Below are positions 29,666-53,479 of a DNA stretch of 64,000 bases, one piece after another. The stretch comes from Oikopleura dioica (taxonomy: Eukaryota; Animalia; Chordata): positions 15,263,208 through 15,327,207 of the forward strand of contig OU015568.1 in the NCBI GenBank assembly GCA_907165135.1, read 5' to 3'. The notes under the pieces are model-generated. The model did no database searches, was not told where the DNA came from, and saw only the letters and a program-made list of their open reading frames with translations. Within the stretch, counting starts at the first letter, position 1; every line of letters starts with the position of its first letter. Both the position numbers and the translations under genes were made by a program.

Positions 29666-29911
29666 ATGAACCCTAGATACAACCACGTATTGAGGATACT
29701 CATGAACGAAAACTTCAGCGAATATGGATCAAGACTGTTAATCCGATTTGCCGACGGAACGTTTTCTGAATGTTTCACCTCAACACTCGGGACCGACTTC
29801 AAAATTAAAAGTTATGAGCTTAGTGGGAAAATATTTAAACTTCTGATAACAGACTCTAAAGTCGGGAGTAACGATCAGTTCCTTGAAAAAAATCTCGACT
29901 TGGGACAATAA
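29666..29911 (+). CDS. Truncated Rab1-like protein (81 aa) with degenerate P-loop
   Basis: MNPRY...LLIRFADGTFSECFTSTLGTDFKIKSYELSGKIFKLLI aligns with Rab1 MNPEY...[38 protein letters not shown]. GxxxxGKS and DTAGQ are lost. Confidence 0.8.
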   Translation: MNPRYNHVLRILMNENFSEYGSRLLIRFADGTFSECFTSTLGTDFKIKSYELSGKIFKLLITDSKVGSNDQFLEKNLDLGQ

Positions 29912-29976
29912 AAGAGACGATTGGAATGCCTCCAAAGCAATCACCATCATAACTTACCATAAACTTAAGGACGAAA

Positions 29977-30405
29977 ATGAAACAAGAGACCCTTCAAAGC
30001 TTGAGAAATCGATACTTGGACCTCATTCCAGAAATACTCTACAGAAATAAACAGTACCACGTCATCTCAAAATTCGAAGGAAATATCGACTCAATAGCAT
30101 TGCTTACAACAAGAGTAATAAACAGCACGACGCTACAACAAATGAGCGCGCAAAAGGGATTGAATAAACTGAAGAAGTTTTTGCAAAACGAAGCAAGTCC
30201 AAAAACACTCGAAGAGCTACTACACTGGCATTTTCATGTAGCTTTAAGAATCAGATCAACCCAAACTGCAGAAGCATACAATCAACAAGCACAACGCGAG
30301 GCTGCGAAATTTTTCCGAGCACACATAGACAACGAAAAAAACATGGGACATATTAAGCAAGGCGAAGTTGGACGACTGCGAAGTAGCAAGAATTGTCGAT
30401 TTTAA
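29977..30405 (+). CDS. Element cargo, hypothetical 142 aa
   Basis: ATG preceded by the acceptor-like cttaag; A-rich coding bias as in neighbours. Confidence 0.55.
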   Translation: MKQETLQSLRNRYLDLIPEILYRNKQYHVISKFEGNIDSIALLTTRVINSTTLQQMSAQKGLNKLKKFLQNEASPKTLEELLHWHFHVALRIRSTQTAEAYNQQAQREAAKFFRAHIDNEKNMGHIKQGEVGRLRSSKNCRF

Positions 30406-30645
30406 CCTGCGAAGCCTAGCATCTCGCATAGAACGAAGGCTATTGCGTGAAGCGGTTGCTCGGGCCGGATTTAGAAGAAATCGGCATCAAATTGAAATTG
30501 AAGGACAAAACATACGCCCACTACTGTTCACGGGAAAGCTACCGGAAGGCTTTAGCCGACGACGGGGCTGACCCAAGCACCTTCCTAATCAAGTCAAAGT
30601 AGAGTCATCAGTCTTAGTATCATTCTTTCAGAATCGAAATCCAAC

Positions 30646-30837
30646 ATGGGGAATATTATTCGCATCATTCATACAATCATTGAAGCCCTCACGATAGTCG
30701 TTAGACCAATAAGAAGTGGAAACGAGGAGCACGAAAAAATCGCTGAAGCAACAATAAAAGATGAAACTGACACGAAGGCAAAACCAAAGTCTGACAAAAA
30801 GCCATCAACCCAAGCCAAGCCCTATAAAAAGGGATAA
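30646..30837 (+). CDS. Small cargo ORF (63 aa) starting MGN, amphipathic N-terminus; overlaps capsid paralog
   Basis: Acceptor ttctttcag 14 nt upstream; Gly2. Confidence 0.45.
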   Translation: MGNIIRIIHTIIEALTIVVRPIRSGNEEHEKIAEATIKDETDTKAKPKSDKKPSTQAKPYKKG

Positions 30838-31519
30838 CGAACCAGACTTGGGGGAAATCAGCAACGGAAGGAGAAAACACTGGCAAAAAGAGGACAAATT
30901 CACAAAAATAATAAATAAAGAAAAGGAAAATAGACGAAACGACATCCAAAGAATAATTGATAAACACCTCGGCGAAAATCAGTTCAGAGCATGGAAATCG
31001 GACGAAAAAATATCATTCTGCGAGCACTTGTGCCGAAACGCAAACGCAATTTGCTTTGCCCGAAACTGTGGCCTCTCAGACAAACAATTGGTTACTTTAT
31101 TTATGCTGACCCTACGCAAAGAGGATATGTACATCGAACAACTGCTTGAAGCGGAGGATTTGCACGACTTCGGTCGTTGCCTGAAAAAGATAGGAAAGTA
31201 TCTGGGGGAAAGGGATGTCATGACAGATGAAATCTTCAACGTAAGAAGAAAGCCAGAAGAGTCGCTCCTGACATTCTTTAAACGCCTCACCCTGGTATAC
31301 GAAGCCTCTTCTAGGCATAGCTTGAAGTCCGATCAAACAGCAGCGTTTCTTTACCCATTAGTAAAAAACAATGCTACAAGAACTCAAAAGATTGAGCTTA
31401 GCAGAGTGCTAGAGGTCAACGGAAAGTACAAAAATGCGATTACCTACGCACGCTTGGAATCCGCGATAAAAGTAGCCCAAATAATGGACGACTCAGTCTT
31501 CAATCCGGACCAAGCTTAA
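30761..31519 (+). CDS. Stand-alone capsid (Gag CA) paralog 1, 252 aa
   Basis: Colinear with Gag CA: GLSDKQLVTLFMLTLR vs GLTDSQMVSLFMLTLR; RRKPEESLLTFFKRL vs KRRPQESLLAFFIRL; PLVKNNAT vs PVIKNNAT; AQIMDDS in both. Confidence 0.9.
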   Translation: MKLTRRQNQSLTKSHQPKPSPIKRDNEPDLGEISNGRRKHWQKEDKFTKIINKEKENRRNDIQRIIDKHLGENQFRAWKSDEKISFCEHLCRNANAICFARNCGLSDKQLVTLFMLTLRKEDMYIEQLLEAEDLHDFGRCLKKIGKYLGERDVMTDEIFNVRRKPEESLLTFFKRLTLVYEASSRHSLKSDQTAAFLYPLVKNNATRTQKIELSRVLEVNGKYKNAITYARLESAIKVAQIMDDSVFNPDQA

Positions 31520-31742
31520 TCACCAGCCACCAAAGAAAGGAGATAGTTAAATAGGAATTAAACGCTGAAAAGAGACGCCACATGAGGATTAACCTGCTCA
31601 GGCTTAAAATAACAGATATCGAACTATTACAAGAAACCAAAAGAAGCTATTTTACTGAAAATATCATAACAAAAAAATGAAGGAAAGAACCTTCAAAACC
31701 CATTGGGCTCACACCAAAGAAATAATAATAACATCATTCAGG

Positions 31743-31985
31743 ATGATTCGTTATAGTGAAAGATATCAGGACAATACGTACGAGTATGTCCACGTCACGG
31801 TCCCAAAGTCTTGGGTCCCGAAAATACCGATTGAGCGCCTTATGACAGTACAAGAGTGGCGGGAACTTGGAATAAACCTCCTAACAAATTGGGAACACTA
31901 TTTGAGACATCTTCCCGAACCACACATCCTCTTGTTTCGCCGCAAACGACAAAAGGAGGAGTCTTTTTCAACCCCGACCAAGTAA
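31743..31985 (+). CDS. Cks1/Suc1 CDK regulatory subunit homolog (80 aa)
   Basis: YSERYQDNTYEYVHVTVPK...LMTVQEWRELG...WEHY...HLPEPHILLFRR matches the Cks signature. Confidence 0.92.
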   Translation: MIRYSERYQDNTYEYVHVTVPKSWVPKIPIERLMTVQEWRELGINLLTNWEHYLRHLPEPHILLFRRKRQKEESFSTPTK

Positions 31986-32127: not shown

Positions 32128-32601
32128 ATGAATGAAGCAACTACTGTTAGTGGCCTCATTATCGGGTTAATAATCGCAATATTGACCTGCGCCCTAATCT
32201 CCTTGATCCTTGTCGTCGTAACAGCCCGGTTCCTTGAAACCAAATACTACTCGCCAGCCCAGAAGGAAGTCGCCAACAGAATAGCGGCCCAACTAGACGA
32301 ATGCCGAACGTTGGTCCGCCGAATCGACGACAGACTGACAAGACAAGCACAACAACAATCAGCCAGACGAGCGCTACGCAATCAACAAAACAAGTTGGCC
32401 GACCAAGTGAACCTGACACTCCCGCGACGTAAACGATGTCGAAGTGAGGATTTGGATGCAGTGTTCCCGAAGCTGAATCTTGGAGGCGATAACGAAACGG
32501 ACAAAGAAAGCCCGGCTATGCCACCGCCAATGCGCCTTCTTGATCGACGCGAATCAAAAATTATGAAAAGATCCTGCTCCCTTGACAATAATCTCTGCTA
32601 A
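32128..32601 (+). CDS. Single-pass membrane protein with cytosolic coiled coil (157 aa)
   Basis: N-terminal TM GLIIGLIIAILTCALISLILVVV; acceptor tttag 2 nt before ATG. Confidence 0.7.
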   Translation: MNEATTVSGLIIGLIIAILTCALISLILVVVTARFLETKYYSPAQKEVANRIAAQLDECRTLVRRIDDRLTRQAQQQSARRALRNQQNKLADQVNLTLPRRKRCRSEDLDAVFPKLNLGGDNETDKESPAMPPPMRLLDRRESKIMKRSCSLDNNLC

Positions 32602-32672: not shown

Positions 32673-33232
32673 ATGACTTTTAATGAAAGCATCGGCCGAA
32701 TTCCAACAAAAGATACGCAAAGCGAATACCTCAGGACTATTCCATCTATCCTGCGAGGAGACGAAGTTGCCAACGTGTTCCAAGCAAGAAAAACAAAGTC
32801 AGCCATTGGCGTTTTGAAAATCATACTTGCCGAATTAATGCGGTCGGAAAAAGCAGTAATGACGCCCGCAGAAGCCTTAGATCATCTAAGAAGCTACCTT
32901 AATACCCACCCAAAAGCAGAATCAGCATCAAGCATCCTCGATTTCCATTGGAGAATTACATTCACCCTGGCAAGCACAAAAGGAAAGAAAAAACTCACGA
33001 AAAGGCCTTGGGCCTAGTCGCAAACTTCATCGACAATCATCTTCTCTCCAAAAGCTTCTTTGAAGAGCTGAAATATGCAAATTTTCACCTCCAAAGCTGT
33101 AGGGAAATATCAAAGAAAAGATGCATTGTCGCCAGGGAGGAGCTGCAAGCAATTCGCGCAGGAGCCGCTGCAAAGAATAGACGTACAATAAAAAATGGCC
33201 TAAGAAGACGAGTCATCATCACAAAAAAGTAA
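32673..33232 (+). CDS. Element cargo, hypothetical (two overlapping ORFs, probably one gene with a 1-nt frameshift near 32942)
   Basis: ORFs 32673-33017 and 32948-33232 overlap; one extra T in gatttc joins them. Confidence 0.5.
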
Positions 33233-33336: not shown

Positions 33337-34116
33337 ATGGACTGTACAAAACATCTCAAAAAAATGTCACCCGAAATAGAACAAAGAAATTATAAAGTCC
33401 AAGTAGCAATAATAAGCAATTTCAGTATGAACTCAATCGAAAGAAAACACTTCTTCGTGTGGAACGTCTTACCAGTGTGCTTCGGTGACCAAATCGCTCC
33501 AAATAGGCTGCCATTTCCGGAATTGTGTGAACTCAGTGGCTTCAAGGCCCTCTTGGACCAACTCATCAACGATCTGTCCGACTTGCAGATCATTACCGAC
33601 GGACTCATAAACGAACTCAAGACGAGACCGGAACGAATCAGACCATTGCTAAAGCGATACGCGCAGGACGCAAATAGAACCCCCACGTGCGTCGCATGGA
33701 CTTTCTTCTATGCAACTCTCGGAACCTATCTCTGTCTTCGAGAAGAATCACACGACCCCCGGATCTATCAGAGATGGAGAAACTGCCTTCTCGAAATCGC
33801 AAACACAAGGCTTGACGACAGCGCCTTCAACTTCGAACTCGCCCCAACCCTATACCTTCTTAGCCGCTCACGAGCTACAGCAATCGGGTCAATCATTGAT
33901 GCTTCCAGACAAGCCGACCAGGAAAGGGAACAAGACAGCGGAAACGAAGGCACTGAAAGTGGATCGGACATCGCCGAAGAGGATTTTCTGCCAGCCAACA
34001 GTGAAATCAATGGGAATGAAGAGCAAGAGCAAGTACTCGAACAACCAAACTCAATGGAGTCCTCACCAGCAAACAAAGCAGCGCCTGAACGTCCCGAAGA
34101 GGAGACATCTCTATAA
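33337..34116 (+). CDS. Element cargo, hypothetical 259 aa with acidic tail containing DSGNEGTES
   Basis: Long ORF with acceptor-like aattaag upstream. Confidence 0.7.
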   Translation: MDCTKHLKKMSPEIEQRNYKVQVAIISNFSMNSIERKHFFVWNVLPVCFGDQIAPNRLPFPELCELSGFKALLDQLINDLSDLQIITDGLINELKTRPERIRPLLKRYAQDANRTPTCVAWTFFYATLGTYLCLREESHDPRIYQRWRNCLLEIANTRLDDSAFNFELAPTLYLLSRSRATAIGSIIDASRQADQEREQDSGNEGTESGSDIAEEDFLPANSEINGNEEQEQVLEQPNSMESSPANKAAPERPEEETSL

Positions 34117-34336: not shown

Positions 34337-34912
34337 ATGTCTCAAAAGGAAAGTCGGCTCGCAAGCGTAGAAGACCTCCTTAACGGAACAGTAAGAAGCC
34401 CAATCCAGTTGTCGCTTTTCAAGGAAACACTGGCCCGGGCAATACTCAAAAAGCCGCAACAGCGATGCAATGACGTGAACGAAGAATGGCTCAGCCCCTT
34501 CTGTGAAGCAGTGAACACTGTAATACGAGCCTCCGAATATTGGCTTGCGGCGCAAACAACGGCAACAAGAATGCGAATTGCAGGAATGCACCATCATCAG
34601 TTAGCCCGCAGAAACTTAGGGTCAACCGAAGACTTAGTATACTTCATTGCCTTTCGAAACATCCAACGATGGCTACAGATTGCGGACCAAGGGTAGGAGC
34701 AAAGAACGGATAATATTCAACCCATAAGAATTTTAAGCTATGACTACTGGTTGATTCTCGAAATCTGGGGATTCTCTTTCAACGAACCCGAAGTGGCGCG
34801 ATGCTTCTACCTGGATGTTCAGGGCTGGACACCGACTCTTCCATCAATCATTCAATATGGCTACCAATGCGCGGCAAAAACGTCACCAATGGGAGACTTC
34901 CGGTTTTTCTAG
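34337..34912 (+). CDS. Element cargo family X, copy 1 (2 exons; intron 34693-34737; 176 aa)
   Basis: Splicing the 45-bp GT-AG intron gives GYDYWLILEIWGFSFNEPEVARCFYLDV, which aligns with intronless paralog 45547 (GFDRAIIKEIGSINVQEPAVAKEFARDV). Confidence 0.8.
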
Positions 34913-35206
34913 GCAATGCTCAAAAGAAGAAATGCGGAACAGCATCAAGCAACGTACTAATTACGTTAACTTAAACAACAGCTGTATGCCACTTATTAAC
35001 AAAATTGATAGTAGTAGAATTGATCTGTGTTATACTTACCCTTCGTACTTATCGATCATCAATTCGAACCAAACTCTGTATCCTACTGTCCGCCATTGTT
35101 ATAACAGTATTTTTTTAAATCCGTAAAAGACTTAATTATGGTCATCGAAGGAAAATTTCAAGAAAGTGAGTAACTATTTTGGTTCAGACAAACGCATAAA
35201 ACAACC

Positions 35207-37057
35207 ATGACAAAACTTATCAAATCAACCAAACAACAAGCTGACTTGTGCAAAGGAGGAACTATCCTCCTGGTCACCAGCACCGATCTCAGCGGGGCAC
35301 TCGCTGCGGCGGTAAAAACCGCAAAGATCGAAGGCAGCTTCCTACTGGCAACATACGAGGAGTCAATCTTTGCCCAGAAATTCGCTAACAGCGCATTACA
35401 ATGGGCAAAGATGAAACAAGCTGCAGAGGAGATATTGGGAGAAAGCCCAAACACTCTGATCTATTTGGACGACTCCCTGGCCCAGCGGCACGGAACCCAA
35501 ATCCCAAGTTCTTCAAAAACTGAACCTGTGCAACAAGTAAAAAGAGAGCCGGGAAAAGGCGAGAGTATCACAGAAGGAGGTCTGGAGGCGAAACCAGACG
35601 TACCGAACGAGCAAGAGACTGAACAAGTCAAAGAGCTCAGGCGACAGATTGAGCGGCTTCGCTTAGAAAATAGCTTGAAGACCGAGAATCTATCAAAAGC
35701 GCTAAGTAAGGTGGGGGCCATAGAAGAGGAACGGAAGGCAAACTGCGAAATGCTTAACCGATACGACGAGATACACAAAGAAATGATCGCAAAAATGGAT
35801 AACGCATCGGAAATCCTCGACAAGGCCAACCATCTTTTTGGTAATCGTAAGCGAGATCACGACAGTAACACCTCAGAAACAGACTCCGAGGAAGAAGATT
35901 GGGACGAACAAAGAGAGAAAGAAGCAGAGGAGCGAAATGCAAGGAAAAGAACGAGCGAACAACGTCAAAAGAAGAGAGGCCGAGAAGAGAATCCCAGTCC
36001 CTCTCGGAGGGAAAGCTCAACAGAGACAACAAGAAAAGAAAAACTGAGCGAGAAAAAGAAGCCAAAGAAGGATGGAGTGGTCCGATTCGTTGGAAACCCA
36101 CAGAAATTCCAATTGAAAAATTGGAAGACGGAAGAGAATATCACCTATTGGGAGCACCTTACAAGGAATAAAATTGCTCTCAACAACGCAAAGCAGAGCG
36201 GGTTAACAGACAGTCAGATGGTGTCACTCTTTATGTTAACCCTCCGCCCCGAAGACGCCTTCATTGAAGAATTGCTGGAAGAATCCTGGAAGAATAATTT
36301 TGAGCTATTTCTGGAAAAAATTGGGAAATTTCTGGCAGGAAGTCAGAGTAGCATGATGAACGATGTATTGACCGCCAAGCGACGGCCTCAGGAATCTCTT
36401 CTTGCATTCTTTATACGGCTTTGCACCATGTTTAAAACATCCTCGGGAAAAGACCCTAAGTCCCAAGAGGCAGCAATGGTGCTTCACCCAGTCATCAAAA
36501 ACAACGCCACTAAAATCCAAAAAACGGAACTAATCCGAGAACTGGAAGCCGGGAAGGCGGCTGACACACCAATAACGTTTGATAAGCTTCAAGCGGCGAT
36601 CAAACAAGCACAAATCATGGATGATTCAAACTTCCATGACGCTCCCGCAGAGCTTGTCTACAACATGGAAGGGGACAAAAGAACGAACACCCAAGAAAAC
36701 CAAGCATGGTCCAACAAGGGGAAAGGGATATCCGAAGCACCCAAGGTTAGCTGGAAGGAGAAAACAAGTGATGAATGGAACAGGGGACCCGCCACCCGGC
36801 CGAACGCAAATCGACCCCCATGGAACCGACAAGAGCGCTTCAGTCGGGGACGAGAACCTTATCCCCGAAGAACTGGACCACGTGAACCCTTATGTTTCAA
36901 CTGCAATGGGCGAGGCCATATGTGGCGCCAATGCAGCAAACCACTCAAAGACCGATTCGTGCGGGCACAAGCACAAGACAAAGCACGAGAGACGCGGGCG
37001 CGAGAGACAAAGACTCCGCCCGGGACAACAACTGCTAAGCCAAAAACCTCGGGCTAA
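35207..37057 (+). CDS. gag: Gag (616 aa): N-terminal extension, coiled coil, capsid, CCHC nucleocapsid
   Basis: Zinc knuckle CFNCNGRGHMWRQC; lies immediately upstream of pol. Confidence 0.92.
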   Translation: MTKLIKSTKQQADLCKGGTILLVTSTDLSGALAAAVKTAKIEGSFLLATYEESIFAQKFANSALQWAKMKQAAEEILGESPNTLIYLDDSLAQRHGTQIPSSSKTEPVQQVKREPGKGESITEGGLEAKPDVPNEQETEQVKELRRQIERLRLENSLKTENLSKALSKVGAIEEERKANCEMLNRYDEIHKEMIAKMDNASEILDKANHLFGNRKRDHDSNTSETDSEEEDWDEQREKEAEERNARKRTSEQRQKKRGREENPSPSRRESSTETTRKEKLSEKKKPKKDGVVRFVGNPQKFQLKNWKTEENITYWEHLTRNKIALNNAKQSGLTDSQMVSLFMLTLRPEDAFIEELLEESWKNNFELFLEKIGKFLAGSQSSMMNDVLTAKRRPQESLLAFFIRLCTMFKTSSGKDPKSQEAAMVLHPVIKNNATKIQKTELIRELEAGKAADTPITFDKLQAAIKQAQIMDDSNFHDAPAELVYNMEGDKRTNTQENQAWSNKGKGISEAPKVSWKEKTSDEWNRGPATRPNANRPPWNRQERFSRGREPYPRRTGPREPLCFNCNGRGHMWRQCSKPLKDRFVRAQAQDKARETRARETKTPPGTTTAKPKTSG

Positions 37058-37067
37058 GGCCCAGGTT

Positions 37068-40000
37068 ATGAACGTCAGACGAGGACGGCCGGATCACTGT
37101 ACAACTCTCCTCGTACGAACTGACGTAAAATTACGATCCGAGCGACGGTATCCAGTAGTGGTCAAAAACATTCTCACTCTCTTGGATACCGGCGCGAGCC
37201 TCAGCTGTGCCAGCCTTGATTTCGCGAAAAATCTGGAGGCACAGGGGTTCCCACTCAATAAGGAGAAGCCTATCCGTAGCAACCCGATGGCAGCGAAAGG
37301 GGCGCGAATGGAAATAGCATTCGACCTTGTATTGGATATAATCTTGCGAGGAGATCCTGATATCAGATTCCCTGGAACTCGCATAAGCATCATCCCGGGT
37401 CTAAGAGCTGAGCTCATTCTCGGAGTGGACAGTTTGCTTAACAAGACCATCCAATTGCAGAGAAGGACCGTTAAAATAAATGGGCAGACTTTCCCGCTTG
37501 CCTGCCCGGAAAACACCGTCCTACTGCGCGTTATCGAAGCCGGAAAGGGACAGGGAATGAATTTCCTGCGGGTTGATACAGGCCCACGAAAAGTGCACAA
37601 GGCATCAAAGCGACTTCTCCTTACATTGGATCCTGAATTTTCGCCCGGAGTCCCAGGAGTGGCTATGATTATCAACTCAAGCGAGTTGGAAACTGAGTTG
37701 ATGATCACGTACCCGGGTCCTGCGACTCCCGTCCCTAAGATATTCCTGGCCAGAATTGACGAGGTACAGGATGACCCTAATGAAGACTCACCGAAGAAAC
37801 TCACTCTCCAAGACATCGAGAAAATGACATCGAAAACAGAGCTTAGCGAAGATGGAATCGAGCGATTGAAGGAAATTCTAAAACAACATTCTGAAGCATT
37901 CTCGAAAGAAAAGACAGACGTTGGACTATATCAAGGACCGGAAGTCAAGCTCCAGCTTCTCGACCCCAGGCTCCCTGGAGCATGGGTTCGGCCAAGAAGA
38001 ATACCTTTCAGCCAAGTGGAATGGTTGAAAGCTGAGCTAAAGAAGATGGAAGAGGCGGGGATCATCGAAAGATCTACCGGAAGTAGCTTCAACGCGCCAC
38101 TCCAACTGGTAAAGAAGGCGAGCGGGGGCTATCGCATCTGCGTTGACATGAGAGCTCTTAACAACAGGCTCGCTGAAAGCAAATGGCCCCTTCCGTCCCT
38201 TGCCGAGACGTTGGAAAGCTTGTCGGGGTCTGCCTTCTTCTCCTGCGTGGATATAAGACAAGCCTTTTTCCATATGGCGCTGGAAGAAGAAAGCAAGCCG
38301 CTTACTGCGTTCTCAGCTCTCAATTCGCAATACCAGTTCAGACGGTTACCCATGGGTCTCAAGATCTCGCCGAGCGTCTACCAAATGGCAATGAAAGCCA
38401 CTCTGGGAGACGATCTGGGTAACCGTGTGGTCGCCTATCTTGACGACGTCCTCGTGTGTGGGAAAAACGAAGAAGAGCACCTCCAGACACTCGACCTCGT
38501 CCTTGCGAGACTTAAGAAAGCGGGGTTCCTGTTGAATCCAGACAAGTGCATCCTTGGAGCAAAGAAGATAACGTTTTTGGGGCACGAAGTAACACCAAGC
38601 GGCTATTTTCCAAAGACAGACAATCTTGCGGCCATACGAGAGTTTCCAGTACCGACCAACAAGAAGGCGCTTCGAAGGTTTATCGGGATGTGTTCGTTTT
38701 ACAGCACACTCGTTCCTAATCTTCAACGAAAACTAGCCCCGCTTCATGAAATCAGCGGGCCAAAAGCAACCTTCAATTGGACAAGCTCGCAAGAAGACGC
38801 GTTTCACCTCATCAAAAGGCTTATGGTGGCTCAAACTGGGCTAGCCTTTCCATCGAATGACCCAAAAGCTGTCTTGTTAGTCACATCAGACGCCAGTGAA
38901 ACGGGTTTCGGCGGAATGATAAGTCAGAAAATAGGAGATGAGGAAGAACAGCCCTTGGGCTACACTAGCGGATTCTTTCGAGGTCCTCAAGTGCGGTGGG
39001 CCATAAACGAAAAGGAACTTTATGCTTTCATTAAAACTCTTGAAACATTCCATCACTTCGTTTATGGGAGATCATTCCGATGGCGGACGGACAGTAAATG
39101 CCTGTCTTTCATTTGCGCGGAAACAAATGGCAAGCAAACCAGAAGACCATCTGCCAAGAAACTCCGCTGGCTGGAAAAATTAACAGAATACGATTTTAGC
39201 ATCACTCACTGCGAAGGGACAAGCCTCGAAATGAGTGTCGCTGACTGTCTTTCCCGGATTGATCCCCCAAACTTGGTAATGCACATCGACTCGGAAATTC
39301 AGAAGAAGTATAGGATGCTGAACCGACCAATCCCGACCTGGATAAAACTTAAAGGAATCACGAAGTCTGAGCTTCGCTTGGCCCAGGACAACGATGGAGA
39401 CTTGGTCAATTTTCGTAATGGATGGAAACCGCTGAAAGCCAAATATAGACTCAAGGAGCGAAGCGATGGAATACTTGTTTATGATCACAAGGATAAACCC
39501 CGGATTCCAATCCCGCAAGAACTCCAAGACAGGATTATATTAAGCTTTCACCTCCCACACCACGGAAGAACAACCAACCTGGTCCACGCGATGAGGGACG
39601 CGGATATCATCTTCCCAAAAATGGCAAAGAAGATAAAAACCAAGGTACAAACGTGCCCAGCGTGCCTCGCAACCGGAACGACCGAGAACCCAAAGCATCG
39701 ACAAGTGACGGCGCCAAAAGAGATGCATCCGAACATGACCGTAACCATCGACCTTTTGGGTCCTTTACCGACAAGTCCAACTAGAAAGAAGTATATCCTC
39801 GCGGCCGTAGACAATCTCACTCGTTGGATTGAGTTGAGGTGCATAGTCGACAAGACAGCCGAGCACGTTGCAAAAGCCCTTCTCGATATATTTTTTCTAA
39901 GAGGCCCCCCAAGGGCCGTATCTTGTGATTTCGGTCGAGAATTTAACAACGTGCTCTTAACAGAACTATTAACATCGTTCGGCACAGCAGTCAACCATGG

Positions 40001-42821: not shown

Positions 42822-43187
42822 ATGGGCGGAAAAAATTCGGCGTGCAAAACCCCCTGTCCCGAACCGATCTGCCCCGTCAAACACACCATAAGATGGGATA
42901 TGGCTTGGGAAATGACGCGGAACAAAATCAAAGAAACAAGTGCATGGCCGTATCTTACATCTATTATGATAGGAACAATCATCACACTTGTAGTCAAAGT
43001 ATACACGAACCGACGAGAAGAAAAGTATCAGCCTTCCGAAACGGCATCGAGAATTATCCTCGACACCCAAAATATTGCTGATTGGACACAAACGGCAGCA
43101 ACGACAGGCTCTAAACACAATTCTGCTATAAGAAACGATAAAACTTGTACTGTTAGGAATAATCTCGAAAGAGTAACCCATCTCTAA
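42822..43187 (+). CDS. Small single-pass membrane protein (121 aa), N-myristoylation consensus MGGKNS, Cys/Pro ectodomain
   Basis: CKTPCPEPICP, TM WPYLTSIMIGTIITLVVKVY. Confidence 0.7.
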   Translation: MGGKNSACKTPCPEPICPVKHTIRWDMAWEMTRNKIKETSAWPYLTSIMIGTIITLVVKVYTNRREEKYQPSETASRIILDTQNIADWTQTAATTGSKHNSAIRNDKTCTVRNNLERVTHL

Positions 43188-43831: not shown

Positions 43832-44047
43832 ATGGCCCCAAATACTTGCAAACCAACGAATTGTCCCTCAACCGAATGTTCCGAAGCCGTAGAAAAACTT
43901 GATTTACCGGGGACCGTCTATCTAGCGGACACGATAAGCAAAATCCTATTTTCAATCATATACATTTTGCTTGGAATCGTCGGCTGGATGTGCGTGCATG
44001 CTCTCTTCAAGTACTTTAAAAATAGTCAAGAAAAAAAGACAGAATGA
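43832..44047 (+). CDS. Small single-pass membrane protein (71 aa), Cys/Pro N-terminus
   Basis: CKPTNCPSTEC, TM ILFSIIYILLGIVGWMCVHALF; upstream cactaac branch point + ttccgtttag. Confidence 0.7.
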   Translation: MAPNTCKPTNCPSTECSEAVEKLDLPGTVYLADTISKILFSIIYILLGIVGWMCVHALFKYFKNSQEKKTE

Positions 44048-44953: not shown

Positions 44954-45487
44954 ATGCGGTACAGATGCGCTTATTGCAACACTCAATGGGCGTCCATAAA
45001 TTTCGAAGACGGCTGTAGAAATTGCAATAGCGATTTCATCGAAATAATCAATGATCGAGCCAGCACACGAGATTCAAATACAAACTGGACCACCCTGGGA
45101 CAAATCAAGTGGACTCTGACGATAGAGAAAAGGCACTGGGAGAAGCTTAAGTCCTTAAACACCGACCTGGTAAAGAGCAAACAGAAAAAATAGAGCGGCT
45201 TAATGAATCACGTATTTAAGATGATGCGATTCCGCATTCCGACGCCCTCCTCGCCCAAAGAGAAGCTAAGAACCGAAAAGGAAGGCGGTAAGGACTTTCC
45301 CGTGGACAAGCAACGCCAAAAGGAAGTGGACATCTGCGCAATATGCCAGGAAGGACTCTTCAACAACCTTGCTTGCCTACGTTGTAATCATGTTTTTCAT
45401 CAAGGTTGTATTCGCAAGTGGTTAAACCAACCACGCTGCTCGCGCTGTCCGTACTGCAACCAAACAGTCCCACTGCGTTTCTTCTAA
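44954..45487 (+). CDS. RNF126/RNF115-like E3 ligase A: Zn ribbon + RING-H2 (intron 45170-45220; 160 aa)
   Basis: YRCAYC...CRNCNSDFIEII (cf. CPRCESGFIEEL); CAIC...CNHVFHQGC..W...CPYC. A 51-bp GT-AG intron joins them in frame. Confidence 0.75.
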
Positions 45488-45546: not shown

Positions 45547-46104
45547 ATGGAACAGGCAAAAATTGACAATATTATCATTGGAACAGCGGAAGACGCGATC
45601 AAGCTTTCCTCCTTCCAAGAAATTATCGTACGAGAAATCCTGGGGAAACCGAAGTTGATTGGTTTCAATGCTGAAGAAGAATGGCAGCGTCCCCTGAGAG
45701 ACGCCGTTCATTTGGTAAACCAGAAAGCCGAACTATGGCTAAGATCCCAAACTTGGCAGGAACAAGCAACAATAGCGAAACTGCCGAGACAACGACTAGC
45801 GACAACAACTTTGTCTTCCACCAAGGACCTCGCACTGCTGATCGCATTCCGAACTATGCAAAGAAAGTTGAAAAGCCCTTGGCAAAAAGAAGGTTTTGAT
45901 CGCGCGATCATCAAAGAAATTGGGAGCATCAATGTTCAAGAACCAGCGGTCGCCAAGGAATTCGCTCGCGACGTAAACACGGGAATAGAATCGATTCCGG
46001 CAATCATCGAAGAGGCGTACACAAAAATAAAAAATGAAGAATCACTGGAAGATACCCGAAAAAAACCTGTTAAACCTGCATGTCTGACACTTTCCCAGCG
46101 ATAA
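45547..46104 (+). CDS. Element cargo family X, copy 2 (185 aa, intronless)
   Basis: IKLSSFQEIIVREILGKP / EEWQRPLRDAV / STKDLALLIAFRTMQR align with copy 1 (34337). Confidence 0.8.
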   Translation: MEQAKIDNIIIGTAEDAIKLSSFQEIIVREILGKPKLIGFNAEEEWQRPLRDAVHLVNQKAELWLRSQTWQEQATIAKLPRQRLATTTLSSTKDLALLIAFRTMQRKLKSPWQKEGFDRAIIKEIGSINVQEPAVAKEFARDVNTGIESIPAIIEEAYTKIKNEESLEDTRKKPVKPACLTLSQR

Positions 46105-46202
46105 GAGAAAAGCTGGATAATACTTCCCCGAACTCATTTCCTTCCGTCTTAAACAAGTCAACGTCTTTTAGAAAGCATTTGCTGACAAAAAGTAATTTAA
46201 GA

Positions 46203-46694
46203 ATGAAGCAAACCGGAGGAAATTACATCCTCTCCCTTGTCATGAATCAACCAACTGCAATGCCCAAAGAGGAGCTCGCCGCGAAGGGACTTGACCGTGG
46301 TAGAGCATTCGGGGAAGGATGCGGAGGAACTCAAGACAAATTCCTCGGTAGCAAAATTGGGATCGACGCTATGATAGAGGCAGTGAAGCAAACCCTCGAA
46401 GAATTGTCCGAGGGTCGAGACCTGCCTGCAGAACAAGGAGGACTTCTAATGGGAACCGCGATAGGCTTTATGAAAAGCCACGGTCACTCACCTCTTCACG
46501 AGGAAGGCTATCGAAAAATAGTGCAAGTCGTGTTTCCTCGATTGGCAAACGTACAAACACCGGCTTACTGGAGCCCTAAAACAATATTCGCACACCTGTA
46601 CTTCAATCTCATGATGAGACGACAGAAACTACCCAGACAGGGCGTAGGCGCGGAGCCACCGAAGGTAAGCTTGCAAGATGTGTCCCGAAATTAA
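46203..46694 (+). CDS. Element cargo, hypothetical 163 aa
   Basis: ATG after acceptor aatttaag. Confidence 0.6.
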   Translation: MKQTGGNYILSLVMNQPTAMPKEELAAKGLDRGRAFGEGCGGTQDKFLGSKIGIDAMIEAVKQTLEELSEGRDLPAEQGGLLMGTAIGFMKSHGHSPLHEEGYRKIVQVVFPRLANVQTPAYWSPKTIFAHLYFNLMMRRQKLPRQGVGAEPPKVSLQDVSRN

Positions 46695-47038: not shown

Positions 47039-47700
47039 ATGAGCTCCCCAAGAGATTCGAACCTAGCTCCAAAAACCGAGCCGGAAATAAAGGTAAATAA
47101 ACAAAATGATAAGAGCTAATCTTCCCTAAGGAGGAATCCGTTCATCTCGAGCTACTCAAATCCTACAAGCACCTCCTTCCGAACCAAATCTACAATTATG
47201 CCAAACTTGTCGTTAAACGAGTAATGACAACTGACCCAAAGCTTTCCCCAAAAGGCATCGTGACCAGCGCAGTTTATTTGGCGTACAAATTTTCGCCAGA
47301 GCCAAAAACAACAACAGCCATCGGAGAAATGCTGAAATGCCCAAATTGGATGATTTACAAAACCGCACCGTTAGTACGGACACGATTCAACAAGGAGACC
47401 AAAAACGAGCTAGAGATTGCAAGAAAATACATCGATCAACAAGCTCATCTCGCTGATTCGGATTGGATCACTCGGGCAAGACAAATAGCCGACCATGCCT
47501 GGCACCCCAACATCAAAGCGAGCCCGAAAAGAATTGCTGCATCATCCGCGTACTTAGCATACAAATTTTCGCCAACACCAATGTCGGCGAGGAAAGTAGC
47601 ACAGCAATGGAACTTCTCCACAGCGCAAATTCTGGCAACAGCCCAAACCATTCAGAAGCATCTCAAAATAGTCTGTTTTATTACCGCCCGGCGGGAGTAG
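47039..47700 (+). CDS. TFIIB-core-like (two cyclin-fold repeats, no Zn ribbon); intron 47093-47130; 207 aa
   Basis: Repeats GIVTSAVYLAYKF and RIAASSAYLAYKF. A 38-bp intron (GTAAAT...gctaat...ccctaag) supplies an in-frame ATG exon. Confidence 0.7.
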
Positions 47701-47749: not shown

Positions 47750-48524
47750 ATGGCTAGCTTTCGCTGCTTAGGTTGTAACCTGAATTGCGAGGAGATTCGA
47801 AAACCCTGGAATTGCCCGAATTGCAACAGTAAGTTCATCGATCTAATAGGAAAATGGAAAAAAGAAGACGTGGTAGACAAGACCGGTTACAACAATGGAG
47901 AGATTCTCTTCAAAATCGTTGCAAACCACGAGAGGGCAATCAGCCAAATCAAACACTTGATGGAACTTAGTAACTGTCGAACCTCTGCACATGTAAGTGC
48001 CCTAGATGGTTGGGAAAAAGTAAAAAATTAATCAGGGTGAAACAAATGAAAACGCCCAAACACCGGGGCCTACTCCATCAACGGAACCACCGAAAGACCC
48101 AACAGGCAGAAAGACGTCCGGGCTTTTAGAAGAAAAGAACAGTTTCAAAAAGGCACCGACTTCTGTTAACCTTGAAGGACGGAATCAATTGAAAATGAGA
48201 CCACAGCCAAGGGTAGGAGAAATAGAAGGTATTCGGGGACAGTGCCAAGGAAGATACCTCATACCAAATGGGAAGCGTAGACATAAACAAAAAACAATTG
48301 AAGAAATTGGGACTCGCGAATATGAAAGACGCGAGGACACACTTCGACATTCCACCATGCATGAGACTCTTGAATACCCTTGCGGCATCTGCATGGAAGA
48401 ATTCGCGGCCAAGTGCTGTTCATTCCTCCCCTCGTGCGGGCACACTTTCCACACTCACTGCATCCTAAAATGGCTTCTCCACAAAAATACCTGTCCAATT
48501 TGCCAGGAAATCATAGCAAAATAA
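47750..48524 (+). CDS. RNF126/RNF115-like E3 ligase B: Zn ribbon + RING-H2 (intron 47993-48035; 243 aa)
   Basis: FRCLGC...CPNCNSKFIDLI; CGIC...CGHTFHTHC..W...CPIC. A 43-bp GTAAGT...CAG intron joins them in frame. Confidence 0.8.
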
Positions 48525-48576: not shown

Positions 48577-49421
48577 ATGGACGAGAACCAAGAGGAAGCA
48601 GCACAAACTGAAAACGAAGAATCACCGCATAATTCAAGGCAGAAGGAACAAACACTGCCATGTTTCTTGGAAGAAATAATGACACCACCGAAGAAAATAG
48701 GGCGCCTAGAAGTAATCAACCCAGATGGAACAAGAACTTTGCAACAATTCGTTGAAGGAGGAGCCACGTGCGAGGAACTGCAAGCACTCTTAGACTCACT
48801 TTCACGCATTGAATTGACAGAATGGGAAAAAGAGGTAGGCGACCCCTGCCGCATTTGCCTGGAAGAATTTGACAAAACAGCAAACCTTATACCCACCTGT
48901 GGACACTTCTTTCACCAACATTGTCTACGAAACTGGCTCATATGGAAGGATTCTTGCCCACTATGCATCTTACCGGTAAACGAGAACAGATTGAACATGA
49001 CCCGAAAATACTTTAGGTTAAGCCGAAAGGAACCATCCCAATAACAATTAAGGATTGGCTGGAAAAGAAACATAAAGTTAAGTACGAATCGTTGCTCGAT
49101 GCGGTAAATATACTTGAAAAGAAGGAAGAATATGACAACATCAACTCACATTTCCGCCTCGAACCGGACGGATCGCTCATTGAAATAAAAATCATCTTCA
49201 GGAAAGTCGAAGGCGAAGAATTGGAGGAAAGGCTCATGCTGACAAAGAAAATCAAGATAAGCGCAGTAGAAAAGTACGAAAGTGATTGCGGGCTCTGCCA
49301 GGAAGACCTGCCTGAAGACATATCGGTCATGACATGCTGTTACGCCTACTACCATAATGCGTGCCTGCGAAAATGGCTAGCAAACAGACCTTACTGCAAG
49401 TACTGCAACACCCCCCTATAA
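48577..49421 (+). CDS. Tandem double-RING protein (intron 48976-49016; 267 aa)
   Basis: RING-H2 CRIC...CGHFFHQHC..W...CPLC and a second RING CGLC...CCYAYYHNAC..W...CKYC. A 41-bp GT-AG intron joins the ORFs in frame. Confidence 0.75.
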
Positions 49422-49481: not shown

Positions 49482-50351
49482 ATGATGTTTAGAATGCTCT
49501 CCACAAACACATTTCAGCTCTACGTATGGCTTCCTACCGAAAACATTTTTTTCGAGAACCATGTCTCGAGGAACCAACAAGGATTCCGGGACGCACGGAA
49601 AGCAGGGCTCTCCGACGAACAATTGACAAGTCTCTTTCTCATAACACTGACACCAGAACAAAGGAGTTACGAGACTCTCCTCGACGAAATTGAGAAAACA
49701 AATTTTGATCTATGCGTAGATCGGATGAGGAAGATTCTTACCACGAACCTGGTATACGATCGAGACTTGCCATACCTCGACGCCAAGGAAAAATTCCGGC
49801 TCTATGTATGGGGACCAAACGAAAAAATCAGCTTCGCACAACATGTGGCAAGAAACAGACAAGGGTTCAACAGCGCAAGAAAATGTGGGCTTCTAGATGT
49901 TGATCTCACTCGTCTTTTGTTTATGACTCTCAGACCAGAGTTTGCACACCTCGAGAAAGGCCTAAATAGGAATGAAAAAACCAAACTCGAGCTTTGCATC
50001 GAGAGAATGAAGAAATGTATTTCAGCGAAACATCAAAACCATAATAAGGGGAATGAAGTAAACGGAAAACGCAAAGAAGGCGAAGCCCTGATCATTTTCT
50101 TCGGACGACTCTGCGCAGATCTGCAAAAGTCACCTGGCGAAGAACCACTATCAGACGCCGCGGCCCTCAGAATAATTTACCCTATTCTCCTACAGAACTG
50201 TGGCCCTGCCGAGTTCCATACCCTTGTCAAATATAAGAGCAGCGACGGAACCCAAGATTTAACCTTCAGAGCGCTTGCAGCTAAACTAGGGAACCTGCAC
50301 GTACCCTACGGTGGCATACAAACAAGACCAAGACGCGCTATTAATCGCTAG
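49482..50351 (+). CDS. Capsid paralog 2 with tandem-duplicated CA N-terminal module (289 aa)
   Basis: FQLYVW..ENI.F..HV.RN.QGF..ARK.GL.D..LT.L...TL.PE occurs twice and matches Gag FQLKNWKTEENITYWEHLTRN...GLTDSQMVSLFMLTLRPE; then RKEGEALIIFFGRL. Confidence 0.85.
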   Translation: MMFRMLSTNTFQLYVWLPTENIFFENHVSRNQQGFRDARKAGLSDEQLTSLFLITLTPEQRSYETLLDEIEKTNFDLCVDRMRKILTTNLVYDRDLPYLDAKEKFRLYVWGPNEKISFAQHVARNRQGFNSARKCGLLDVDLTRLLFMTLRPEFAHLEKGLNRNEKTKLELCIERMKKCISAKHQNHNKGNEVNGKRKEGEALIIFFGRLCADLQKSPGEEPLSDAAALRIIYPILLQNCGPAEFHTLVKYKSSDGTQDLTFRALAAKLGNLHVPYGGIQTRPRRAINR

Positions 50352-50703: not shown

Positions 50704-51675
50704 ATGGATAAACATAAAATTATCGGAGAAAAGGCAAGTGGGCTGCTTTCTGGGCTCAATGATTTGCTCCCACACCTCGGTCCCCTCGGTAAAGTCTGGT
50801 ACGCAACTTTGCTGGTAAGAAGTATTGTCCTATTAACAGTTGGTACGGAAATTTATTCAAACGATTCAGGCGGATTCAGATGTAGCACCAAACAGCAACT
50901 GTGTAGCTCAGTTTGCTATAACCAATTTTTACCAGTCAACCTGACTAGATTTTGGACTTGGCACCTCGTCATTATTGGGATCGTCACTCTGGGGCTCGGA
51001 CATCTTATCCTGAAACCCGCAGAAGACGTACAGCTTATGCGATTACTCGAACACGACATAAACCCAAAACCGACAGAATTAATCGTCTGGCCAAATCGCC
51101 AGGACCGGCCAAGCTGGACATTTCAACTGAAGAGGCTTAATGAACTCCGCTCAAAATATGGGCATATGCAAGGCTTCAAAGAAAAATACAAAGGTAATCG
51201 CCTGGTCATCACGACACCATCAACGAACTGGAAACGAATCTTGTTCCTAACCAGTCTGTGCGTCATTGACCTTATTTTTCTAATTATGAATTTTGTGCTC
51301 CTCAAACACCAATACAACCACGAAACACCTTGGACGACCCTCCTTAAGGCAGGACAACTGTTGAAGACCCCAGCTTCATTTATCTGCAAAATTGATAAAT
51401 ACGCGATACTATCAGAAAAAGAGACGAGGAATTTCGCGGAAACTGGATATGATCCTGCTGACCCGCGTTACTTCTTCTGGAAAGCACAGCACGCATGTGC
51501 CCAATCCGAGTCCGTCTGTACTGTCGACAAATTCACGGAAAAAACGTTTATCTCCTGTACCATGATCGGTGCAACCCTAGCGGGCACTCTATTGCTAGCA
51601 ACAGGCGGACTGTTTTACCTGATTAAAATAATTCATAGAATTCTGTCAAGACAATGGAAAATCAGGCGGACGTAA
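50704..51675 (+). CDS. Connexin (gap-junction/hemichannel protein), intronless, 323 aa
   Basis: GKVW TM1; EL1 FRCST.Q..CSSVCYN...P....RFW; EL2 C...C...C with FTEKT; four TM segments; very short C-tail. Confidence 0.92.
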   Translation: MDKHKIIGEKASGLLSGLNDLLPHLGPLGKVWYATLLVRSIVLLTVGTEIYSNDSGGFRCSTKQQLCSSVCYNQFLPVNLTRFWTWHLVIIGIVTLGLGHLILKPAEDVQLMRLLEHDINPKPTELIVWPNRQDRPSWTFQLKRLNELRSKYGHMQGFKEKYKGNRLVITTPSTNWKRILFLTSLCVIDLIFLIMNFVLLKHQYNHETPWTTLLKAGQLLKTPASFICKIDKYAILSEKETRNFAETGYDPADPRYFFWKAQHACAQSESVCTVDKFTEKTFISCTMIGATLAGTLLLATGGLFYLIKIIHRILSRQWKIRRT

Positions 51676-51712
51676 AATTCGACTACCAAATTGTAACGAA
51701 ACACGCTTTAGA

Positions 51713-52622
51713 ATGTCTGCTCCAGGCTGCTCTCTTCCCGCCTTTACCTGCTCATATCATGGCCCAAAGCACATAGCCGACGAAAGGCTTGTGACAGGAG
51801 ACCTTATCTGCAAAATATGCGGACTTGTCGTAGGAGAAAGATGCCCACCACTCAACCCAGAAAAATCAATGCGAGTGACGGCCATCAAACCAAACGAAAA
51901 CTTGCCAAAAACTTTCACCCGGAATAACGAAGAAACAGGGGACGAATGCATCATATCAAACGAGGCCCAACTATCCAACCGCGAGAAAAATAGGTTACAA
52001 ACTGTCCTTCGGGAATGTGAAGACCTCATCGAAGAAGCAGGAGCCCGATTGATATACTCAGGACTCACTAATACAAAACTACGAGCTTACGAACTCATCA
52101 AAAAGCTATACCTCAAAGAAAAACAGGGAACAACTTGGTACTTCCACCGCCAAAATCGCGCAGAACCCGTGGCAATAGCGGCGTGCCTCTACCTGGCCAG
52201 TAAGCAAGAGAACTGCGACCTGAGCTTGGAAGAAATCTGCCAGGCAACTGGCACCTCTCCCCCTAATCACCCAGAGAATGATTCGCAAATTCGATACCTT
52301 CCTCAGAACAGCAAAAATCGACGCACACATTAAAAACAGAATCAAACCTTACATCCAAAGAATAGCAGCTGCGCTTCGATTAACTAATCACCAAGCGAAA
52401 GAAATCGAAGCGCATGCCATCCTGATAAGCAAAGAAACCCCATCAGCCACAACCTCAGCAAAAACGCTCGCCGCCGCCAGCACCTACGTATATATCGACC
52501 GAATAAACCGACCAAAGTCAGTCAAGGAAATAGCAAGACTTGTGAACGCGGGAACCCGGCGGCTTCAAATCTACATCGCAGAACTCCCTCGAACACTCGG
52601 AGGAAGAAGAGAAAGGGAATAG
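51713..52622 (+). CDS. TFIIB homolog (Zn ribbon + core), split by a 1-nt frameshift in a C-run near 52258
   Basis: CSYH...GDLICKICGLVVGER Zn ribbon; AIAACLYLAS...SLEEI and TLAAASTYV...KSVKEIA cyclin repeats. Deleting one C joins the two ORFs. Confidence 0.88.
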
Positions 52623-52858
52623 AAGGAAAAGGTGATTACTATATAAACGCGATGGCGCTACAAAACCAACACTAACCAATTACGTAGTTAATCCCGCTCG
52701 ATCCTGACAAACAACAACTTAAACACCCAGAATATAGTAGCTGCCACCCATTTATGTCTGTACCCATTATTTCGAACTTCAAACAAAATCTTTATGCCTT
52801 ATGAATAGCGCTCACTCCTTTAAAATAGGCCACTTTCATCCAACATCCGATTTTTAGT

Positions 52859-53479
52859 ATGTCAATCCTTAAAGAAATCCAAACGATCCAAGCCGCGTCA
52901 AACCGACGAATTGTAAAAACGCTGCTCCTCCCAAGAATGGTCGGAATCGAAATACCCATTGGAACCATGACCCTTCGTGATGAGCAGCCCGTCCAAGCCA
53001 TGTACGATTTTATCGATAAAGTCACCGCTTCCGCCATCACCTACCGGTCCATCCCGAACTTAAACTCTGACGCTTTCCTGGACGCCTTTCTGAATCAAAT
53101 CCCAAGACAAGAAACCGAGCAATGCGTTCTACTTTGGATCGCAAAAACCATCATCGTCGCCCATATGACCTTCCATGAAACCAGAGACCGACTGATCGCA
53201 TACCTCACGGATGCTTTCCAAACCAAGTATGGTCGACGTCAGATCCCATTTCGACCAATAGCATTGCCAAGAAACGAACTCCAAGACAAACTCCAAGCGA
53301 TCGAAATCCGCGTTAAAGCGGTCGCTTCTACTATCATCCTCGCCAAACGCGTGGTCAAACCCGGCTTGCCAAAAATGGAGCCAACTCCGGCTAGAAAAGG
53401 GACCAGACAACGAATGCGAAAAATCCAACGTAACAGACGAAAGTGGTCGGCATCGAGCACCAAATCCAATGAGGCTTAA
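52859..53479 (+). CDS. Last cargo gene (206 aa): candidate Rev/Rex-like RNA export adaptor (NES + Arg-rich motif)
   Basis: ELQDKLQAIEI fits the CRM1 NES spacing phi-x3-phi-x2-phi-x-phi; RKGTRQRMRKIQRNRRKW resembles the lentiviral Rev ARM. The function is inferred. Confidence 0.55.
   Translation: MSILKEIQTIQAASNRRIVKTLLLPRMVGIEIPIGTMTLRDEQPVQAMYDFIDKVTASAITYRSIPNLNSDAFLDAFLNQIPRQETEQCVLLWIAKTIIVAHMTFHETRDRLIAYLTDAFQTKYGRRQIPFRPIALPRNELQDKLQAIEIRVKAVASTIILAKRVVKPGLPKMEPTPARKGTRQRMRKIQRNRRKWSASSTKSNEA

Follow-up and report, generated by a model that had tools for sequence, protein, structure and literature searches.

A 37-kb Ty3/gypsy-type element of an oikopleurid larvacean carries about 30 same-strand cargo genes, most of them preceded by splice-acceptor-like sites

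Retroelements are thought to be limited to roughly 10 kb and a few genes, one reason being that each extra gene needs its own route to translation from a single transcript. The stretch of DNA analysed here (64,000 nucleotides, hereafter the window, whose own numbering is used throughout) is deposited under Oikopleura dioica (GenBank assembly GCA_907165135.1, contig OU015568.1, forward-strand positions 15,263,208 to 15,327,207) and contains one Ty3/gypsy-type long terminal repeat (LTR) element of 37,362 bp (16491-53852), with a region of cargo genes inside it. About 30 open reading frames (ORFs) other than gag and pol lie on both sides of gag-pol, all on the plus strand and all intronless, and a T-rich AG site with the appearance of a 3' splice acceptor stands just upstream of most of their start codons and of that of gag. 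We consider it quite possible, with a chance only just short of even, that these sites are working acceptors and that the spliced leader (SL) of the host would be trans-spliced at them onto the cargo and gag messages.

Architecture of the element

The element is bounded by two LTRs whose similarity ends sharply at the LTR edges. Each carries a TATA-like box with AATAAA 66 nt downstream, and between and around the pair the following features were found.

16487-16490 and 53853-53856, no strand: target-site duplication, the same 4 bases outside the left and the right LTR
16491-16797, plus strand: 5' LTR, 307 bp, TG...CA, an exact repeat of 53546-53852, with the TATA-like box at 16648 and AATAAA at 16714
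16799-16810, plus strand: primer-binding-site-like 12-mer beginning with TGG, one base past the 5' LTR, read directly
16830-16931, plus strand: leader with three 5'-splice-donor-like sites from a pattern scan, at about 16830-16832, 16859-16861 and 16925-16927
53533-53545, plus strand: polypurine tract, read directly, adjoining the 3' LTR
53546-53852, plus strand: 3' LTR, 307 bp, 100% identical to the 5' LTR

A previous reading made from the letters by themselves (the sequence-only reading) had recognised a retroelement with a cargo of about 30 genes at 29666-52861; one LTR element with some 30 same-strand ORFs is indeed present, and the span it gave covers only part of 16491-53852. Besides the LTR pair there is no further long direct repeat in the window, so gag-pol is not a smaller element nested in a larger one. 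Assignment to Ty3/gypsy is supported by the TG...CA LTR pair with its target-site duplication, the primer-binding-site-like stretch, the polypurine tract and the order of the pol domains, with two exceptions: gag is not the first ORF, nine others lying before it, and its CCHC match falls below the cut-off. A tRNA scan of the window found no tRNA gene with which the primer-binding site could be compared.

Gag and pol

The genes of the element proper occupy the middle of the coding region and are uninterrupted.

35207-37057, plus strand: gag, 616 aa, CCHC knuckle at E = 0.0035 (below the Pfam cut-off), TTCAG 19 nt upstream of the ATG
36579-40607, plus strand: pol, an open frame of 1342 codons, with Pfam matches to reverse transcriptase (RT, E = 1.5e-29), RNase H (2.4e-20) and integrase (2.1e-11)

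With 17.8 bits, the CCHC match stays short of the cut-off (20.8). Between the 5' LTR and the gag ATG lie 18.4 kb and the nine ORFs. The domains of pol follow the order RT, RNase H, integrase, a weak aspartic protease match (E about 0.1) lies upstream of RT, and AATAAA at 40603 overlaps the pol stop codon. The closest relatives of pol are two marine metagenome proteins with 76-77% identity, the next group falling to 36-43%; the named matches are gypsy-type pol proteins, with no Tor sequence among them. The overlap of gag with pol, which is in the +1 frame, extends over about 480 nt (36579-37057) and is long for a gypsy-type element.

Cargo genes

The cargo is listed below in order along the plus strand; motifs are given with their distance upstream of the ATG, and 'no acceptor' refers to the 30 nt before it unless stated otherwise.

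29666-29911, plus strand: Ras-family fragment, 81 aa, Pfam Ras E = 1.3e-5 over profile positions 13-55 only; TTAAG at 8 nt
29977-30405, plus strand: ORF of 142 aa, no recognised family; TTAAG at 7 nt
30646-31519, plus strand: gag-capsid paralogue, 47% identical to gag residues 302-477, one frame change; TTCAG 14 nt before the first ATG
31677-31985, plus strand: CKS (cyclin-dependent kinase subunit), Pfam CKS E = 1.9e-26 at residues 24-90 of a longer ORF
32128-32601, plus strand: ORF of 157 aa with an N-terminal hydrophobic segment; AATAAA, then TTTAG at 2 nt
32673-33017, plus strand: ORF of 114 aa, no recognised family; TTCAG at 1 nt
33337-34116, plus strand: ORF of 259 aa, no recognised family; TTAAG at 6 nt
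34337-34696, plus strand: ORF of 119 aa, paralogue of the unit at 45547; TTTAG at 19 nt
34815-35126, plus strand: ORF of 103 aa, no recognised family, frame test negative; no acceptor
41014-41546, plus strand: unit with a hydrophobic membrane segment and RING (E = 4e-8, in the second frame), one frame change; TTTAG at 4 nt
41650-42321, plus strand: ORF of 223 aa, no recognised family; no acceptor
42363-42509, plus strand: small hydrophobic ORF, 48 aa; TTTAG at 4 nt
42589-42735, plus strand: small ORF, 48 aa; TTCAG at 4 nt
42822-43187, plus strand: ORF of 121 aa; TTAAG at 4 nt
43248-43757, plus strand: ORF of 169 aa; TTAAG at 21 nt
43832-44047, plus strand: small membrane-type ORF, 71 aa; branch-like CTAAC, then TTTAG at 1 nt
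44137-44919, plus strand: ORF of 260 aa, no recognised family; AATAAA, then TTTAG adjoining the ATG
44954-45193, plus strand: ORF of 79 aa; TTCAG adjoining the ATG
45203-45487, plus strand: RING gene, 94 aa, Pfam RING E = 6.5e-8, 9 nt past the preceding stop; no acceptor at the first ATG
45547-46694, plus strand: two overlapping frames, the first a paralogue of the 34337 ORF, one frame change; TTAAG at 5 nt
47224-47700, plus strand: ORF of 158 aa, faint TFIIB-repeat likeness (Pfam E = 0.002-0.005, below the cut-off); no acceptor
47750-48031, plus strand: ORF of 93 aa; branch-like TTAAC upstream, TTCAG adjoining the ATG
48195-48524, plus strand: RING gene, 109 aa, Pfam RING E = 8e-12; nearest TTTAG at about 65 nt
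48577-49044, plus strand: RING gene, 155 aa, Pfam RING E = 2.7e-12; branch-like TTAAC upstream, TTAAG at 1 nt
49092-49421, plus strand: RING open frame, Pfam RING E = 7e-7, no ATG near its 5' end
49482-50351, plus strand: second gag-capsid paralogue, 289 aa, 30% identical to gag 294-470; TTCAG at 41 nt
50704-51675, plus strand: connexin, 323 aa, Pfam Connexin E = 2.6e-18; TTCAG at 7 nt
51713-52622, plus strand: TFIIB-like gene, zinc ribbon against human TFIIB at E = 7.5e-7, weak Pfam TFIIB match, one frame change; TTTAG at 1 nt
52859-53479, plus strand: last cargo ORF, 206 aa, no recognised family; TTTAG at 1 nt

From 29.6 to 53.5 kb the plus strand is 34.4% A and 20.5% T, with an AT skew of 0.2-0.34, and the flanks differ; the description of the cassette as T-poor in the sequence-only reading is therefore borne out (T 20.5% over 29666-53545). 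The annotated frame is the one that best fits the codon-position composition of gag and pol in 28 of 31 cargo ORFs, with about 10 expected by chance, and the cargo ORFs are genuine coding sequence, made like gag and pol. Recognisable among them are CKS, connexin, the TFIIB-like gene, six small RING genes, the Ras-family fragment and two gag paralogues. The CKS domain begins exactly at an internal ATG, 31743, positioned 1 nt past a TTCAG, and this ATG is the likely start of the gene. The connexin matched Cx43, Cx32, Cx46 and Cx26 of the PDB with E values down to 1.8e-13, and its best relative among 1.84 billion representatives is a 47% identical protein of chromosome 2 of O. dioica (Okinawa); these relatives came from an exhaustive search, a word-based protein search having given none.

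The two gag paralogues and the paralogous pair 34337/45547 indicate that genes were duplicated and diverged inside the element lineage. One gag-capsid paralogue stands on each side of gag-pol. Four cargo units contain one frame change each (the first gag paralogue, the membrane-RING unit, the 45547 pair and the TFIIB-like gene), against none in gag and pol, and these are either frameshift breaks or overlapping genes; for such units the coordinates are outer bounds only, the frames having been searched separately. No large glycoprotein-like or env-like ORF was seen in the element. Sequence searches of the PDB with four unrecognised cargo ORFs yielded nothing usable, and AlphaFold2 models made without alignments for 33337-34116 and 44137-44919, with pLDDT of about 40, were too poor to use.

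Acceptor-like sites are coupled to start codons

A TTHAG motif lies 0-21 nt (median 4) upstream of the first ATG in 23 of 30 gene units, counting gag and leaving out pol, and at all 23 sites the ATG of the ORF is the first ATG past the acceptor-like motif. Sixteen of the sites end in YAG and seven in AAG, TTCAG alone accounting for eight of the 23; the other seven units are without the signal. The sequence-only reading, all 16 of whose quoted acceptor sites are present where it had placed them, had credited nearly every cargo ATG with an acceptor, an overstatement: this holds for these 23 units if the AAG sites, which are not YAG, are counted in, and fails for seven. The test it had proposed, YAG near ATG against shuffled sequence, gave no enrichment. 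Bare YAG is no more than marginally associated with starts (within 15-30 nt, 29 ORF starts compared with 315 other ATGs, p = 0.02-0.09), and the 96 YAG motifs that have an ATG in the next 10 nt are no enrichment over 1000 dinucleotide shuffles, which gave 91±9. By contrast, the stricter T-rich motifs are clearly coupled to ATG: TTYAG is found within 10 nt upstream of 9 of 29 ORF starts and of 8 of 315 other ATGs (p = 9e-7), and TTHAG within 30 nt upstream of 19 of 29 and 26 of 315, respectively (p = 3e-12, an optimistic value, as TTHAG was picked after inspection).

Shuffling gave the same picture. On the cargo plus strand, TTYAG is followed by ATG within 10 nt 22 times, against 5.9±2.4 in 1000 dinucleotide shuffles with a maximum of 15, and TTHAG 33 times against 9.5±3.1, a count that none of 1000 shuffles reached. 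The total of TTYAG is ordinary (43, with 38.5 in shuffles), so the unusual thing is its coupling to ATG. T-richer spacers were considered as the cause and rejected, with T at 21.8% in spacers and 20.2% in coding sequence. The coupling is absent from the minus strand of the cargo, from the 3' flank and from the 5' third of the element.

The surroundings of the sites were also characterized. The base past the AG is A in 17 of the 23 cargo sites (p = 1.3e-4 against composition), and a branch-like TAAC lies 5-38 nt upstream of 11 of the 23, compared with 7 of 42 other TTHAG motifs (p = 0.009); YTRAC as a branch motif is not enriched upstream of the sites, nor are donors enriched in the cargo spacers. 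The spacers have a median of 72 nt, 15 of 34 being 60 nt or shorter. Of 30 ORF ends, nine have A[AT]TAAA between -6 and +60 nt; 2.65 would be expected at randomly placed positions, and a count of at least 9 came up in 6 of 2000 random draws. This test, anchored at ORF ends, is clearer than that for AATAAA in spacers, where enrichment becomes marginal once A-richness is allowed for.

Host genes and host splice sites

The flanks of the element are closely packed with same-strand genes, and their introns measure about 40-48 nt; in the host gene examined, four introns fall within 1.7 kb, compared with none in the cargo genes. The host exon at 3180-4247, from the glucosidase II beta subunit and the single exon searched, encodes a protein 73% identical to that of O. 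dioica and 99% identical to a protein of a Tara Oceans metagenome scaffold. Judged from this sequence, the host is an oikopleurid larvacean differing from the reference O. dioica.

Of 18 short host introns inferred in the flanks, eight end in TTTAG, three in TCTAG, two in TTCAG, two in AAG and three in other sequences, and the cargo signals look like real 3' splice sites of the host by this comparison of motifs. The base past the AG sets the two groups apart: it is A in 3 of the 18 host cis introns and in 17 of the 23 cargo sites (Fisher p = 3e-4), and in all three of the host gene starts that have the acceptor-then-ATG layout. These are ATG 2891, 2 nt past a T-rich TAG, ATG 4825, 5 nt past TTCAG, and ATG 16482, 11 nt past TTCAG. 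On the gene-bearing strand of the 5' flank the acceptor-ATG coupling amounts to 14 against 7.3, with 6 of 300 shuffles reaching 14. These flank starts and the coupling bear out the earlier view that the cargo layout mirrors that of host genes.

Published work on O. dioica provides the frame for this likeness. A single SL is joined to unpaired acceptors, and operons are resolved by SL trans-splicing (PMC7986045, PMC6389100). At the trans-splice sites the AG acceptor is unpaired and the next base is usually an adenine (PMC6389100). There are 1,765 predicted operons with 5,005 genes, fewer than three genes each on average, separated by spacers of up to 60 nt (PMC7986045), and 693 internal promoters lie inside operons (PMC6389100). 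An Rfam scan of the whole window returned no family and no SL RNA match.

A possible route to separate messages

In the proposed mechanism, transcription driven by the 5' LTR would produce a single very long precursor, whose unspliced form would serve as genome RNA. The host spliceosome would join the SL to the unpaired acceptor 0-21 nt upstream of gag and of most cargo starts, as at host operon genes, and each spliced product would then have the wanted ORF first. Whichever leader is used, splicing probably divides the long transcript into individual messages. Gag itself requires a subgenomic mRNA, because scanning ribosomes could not reach it across the 18.4 kb and nine ORFs that separate it from the LTR. 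Since poly(A) signals are found at 9 of 30 ORF ends, some internal 3' ends are likely, though not at every gene: about a third of the ORFs, with a poly(A) signal after them, would probably give messages that end internally, and the rest may use the common end in the 3' LTR. The AG-A signature favours the SL, because it matches the published trans-splice rule of O. dioica (PMC6389100), unlike the host cis introns. We infer both the use of the sites and the SL as their 5' partner from what was observed directly, namely the anatomy of the element, the enrichment of the sites and their likeness to host sites.

Several points weigh against this proposal. The use of the SL is read from DNA sequence, and SL trans-splicing in this host would be carried over from a relative, to judge by a host protein 73% identical to its O. 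dioica counterpart. AAG, which is a weak acceptor and ends only 2 of the 18 inferred host introns, makes up seven of the 23 sites, and seven gene units are without the signal. To remain full length, a genome RNA of 37 kb would have to pass about 23 acceptors and several poly(A) signals unprocessed. Part of the preference for A after AG could be due to the A-rich sequence upstream of start codons. Donor-like sites are present in the leader, and the Tor3a elements, the only studied relatives in the host group, cis-splice env from the LTR transcript (PMC4402516).

Alternative explanations

The last two points lead to a rival that we consider unlikely, though a serious one: the same acceptors may be used in cis, a leader donor past the primer-binding site being joined alternatively to each of them to give nested, leader-bearing mRNAs, a mode that could also work alongside the SL. 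The three donor-like sites lie within 130 nt past the primer-binding site, where retroviruses classically have their major donor, and resemble host donors; AGGTA, of which the leader has two copies within 30 nt of each other, has a background of 0.78 per kb and occurs elsewhere at only 0.6-0.8 per kb. Tor3a of O. dioica, which makes its env mRNA by splicing the LTR transcript, is a precedent (PMC4402516). Such splicing would need introns of 13-36 kb, far beyond the usual range given that host introns in this window are about 40-48 nt; moreover, the acceptors bear the AG-A signature of trans-splice sites, unlike host cis introns, and in O. dioica, according to published work, an unpaired acceptor receives the SL by default (PMC6389100).

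It is also conceivable, if distinctly improbable, that the acceptors are unused baggage, brought along with captured host 5' ends or merely persisting, and that the cargo is expressed from internal promoters. Such promoters are documented for env of Tor3b/4b (PMC4402516) and in the 693 cases within O. dioica operons (PMC6389100), and the connexin, CKS, RING and TFIIB cargo genes have cellular homologues. Yet the signal is also present at gag, which belongs to the element itself, and paralogues that have diverged to 30-47% identity inside the element retain it; with spacers of 0-90 nt there is hardly space for promoters, and TATAAA and TCTAGA, each present three times in the 24 kb, occur at no ORF start. 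Least probable by far, to the point that we give it hardly any weight, is that the pattern arises from composition or from the way ORFs are defined, through a TAG or TAA stop just upstream of the first ATG. TTTAG and TTAAG do include stop triplets, TAG being an in-frame stop upstream of the ATG in two cases, and bare YAG is not enriched; the enrichment nevertheless persists against ATGs with an in-frame stop within 45 nt upstream (TTYAG p = 5e-5, TTHAG p = 1e-8), the eight TTCAG sites contain no stop triplet, dinucleotide shuffles never reach the observed count, and the opposite strand and other regions show nothing. On these in-frame-stop, shuffle, strand and region controls, chance and ORF definition were rejected as explanations.

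Comparison with known systems

Complex retroviruses of the lentivirus and spumavirus types have a leader donor past the primer-binding site and an acceptor ahead of each accessory gene, and keep some RNA at full length. The element would share this splicing logic with them, through the donor-like sites in its leader and the acceptor-like sites before most of its genes. It differs from them in that they have a handful of accessory genes in about 10-13 kb with gag as the first ORF, whereas here gag itself needs a subgenomic RNA. By analogy, the element appears to resemble a complex retrovirus in logic and a host SL operon in layout: its same-strand genes, its short spacers, close to those of O. 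dioica operons, and its unpaired AG acceptors, usually followed by A and just upstream of the ATG, are of the oikopleurid operon type. Those operons hold fewer than three genes each on average (PMC7986045), whereas the element is a mobile string of some 30 genes, intronless and enclosed by LTRs, and also has to persist in unspliced form as genome RNA.

The Tor elements of O. dioica express a gene beyond pol from a subgenomic RNA, made by splicing of the LTR transcript in Tor3a or from an internal promoter in Tor3b/4b (PMC4402516). They come from the same host group and are likewise LTR retroelements with gag and pol, and in Tor3a an acceptor lies just upstream of the gene beyond pol. Unlike the present element, with about 30 extra genes on both sides of gag-pol, Tor has one, env; here 18 kb separate gag from the 5' LTR, and nothing resembling an env glycoprotein was seen. 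The two are likened by description.

Giant retroelements include Burro, a planarian gypsy-like element of more than 30 kb, Ogre of plants and the Terminons, Penelope-like elements of bdelloid rotifers with many ORFs (PMC6431247). All are far above the usual 10 kb, as is the present element, and Burro and the Terminons carry extra domains or ORFs, ubiquitin-related ones included (PMC6431247). The extra domains of Burro, with env in frame between gag and pol, are contained in large gag-pol frames and are not separate ORFs, Ogre owes its size mainly to LTRs and non-coding DNA, and the Terminons are not LTR elements (PMC6431247). None of the three is described there as some 30 separate cistrons each with its own acceptor. 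The element described here exceeds the giant retroelements of that review in size and gene number, and its construction differs from that of each.

Implications

SL trans-splicing by the host removes the obstacle that each extra gene needs its own route to translation, as any gene behind an unpaired acceptor becomes expressible in such a host. Tentatively, and with somewhat less than an even chance of being right, we propose a chordate LTR retroelement that has passed the usual coding limit as a mobile, operon-like string of about 30 genes (gag-pol, duplicated capsids, host-derived connexin, CKS, TFIIB-like and RING genes), with a repertoire like that of a large DNA virus and messages that would be freed by SL trans-splicing of the host. 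If this is true, it would explain how a gypsy-type element gathered and kept about 30 genes, it would offer a natural case of a mobile element using operon processing, in an expression mode not described for any retroelement, and it would open to test the long-standing idea that trans-splicing makes it easier to capture genes and to extend operons. By analogy with large viruses, a cargo that spans the cell cycle, transcription, ubiquitin ligases and a gap-junction protein suggests that the element may manipulate the host cell as they do. In the literature searched, no giant LTR element with many genes is described from larvaceans, nor any retroelement that makes use of the SL, which is an absence of matches and not proof of newness.

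The 5' part of the element and the flanks

Between the leader and the first cargo ORF lie about 12.8 kb (16798-29599) of lower GC content with a weak excess of A over T. Two features were mapped in this part.

16932-29599, plus strand: 5' part without a recognised gene, GC 0.30-0.46, with degenerate repeats
21857-29464, plus strand: at least 10 degenerate copies of a unit of about 100 nt with an invariant TCAAACT core (17 matches against 4.8 expected), spaced 170-530 nt apart

Pfam searches of 20 ORFs on both strands of the 5' 13 kb or so of the element gave no matches. No RNA family, fold or ORF accounts for the TCAAACT units; a hairpin was rejected, as RNAalifold and single folds compared with shuffles gave no support for it. 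The unit also occurs on the opposite strand (20056-20159, minus). Two minus-strand ORFs in GC-richer islands, 24117-24446 and 25672-26175, have in common a C-terminal stretch of 24 residues that is 67% identical, and may be antisense genes, in which introns could survive retrotransposition, or merely repeated DNA. A tandem array at 25061-25230 consists of 4.1 copies of a 41-nt unit with 86% matches. Just past the leader, a 97-nt unit occurs twice with 79% identity (16891-16987 and 17070-17166), the first copy including one of the donor-like sites.

The element is inserted three codons into a host RING-finger gene (16466-16490 and 53853-54735), and this insertion and the identical LTRs point to very recent activity. 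The ATG at 16482 is in frame across the insertion with an open frame of 104 codons that starts at the 3' LTR edge and has the RING domain inside, the frame having been computed without joining the flanks. A second host RING ORF (54298-54735) lies 3' of the interrupted gene, and the host RING ORFs are 32-34% identical to the cargo RING genes over 50-67 aa. Outside the element, in the AT-rich 3' end of the window, three copies of a repeat of about 63 nt (62721-63097) are 67-76% identical and stand 145-169 nt apart.

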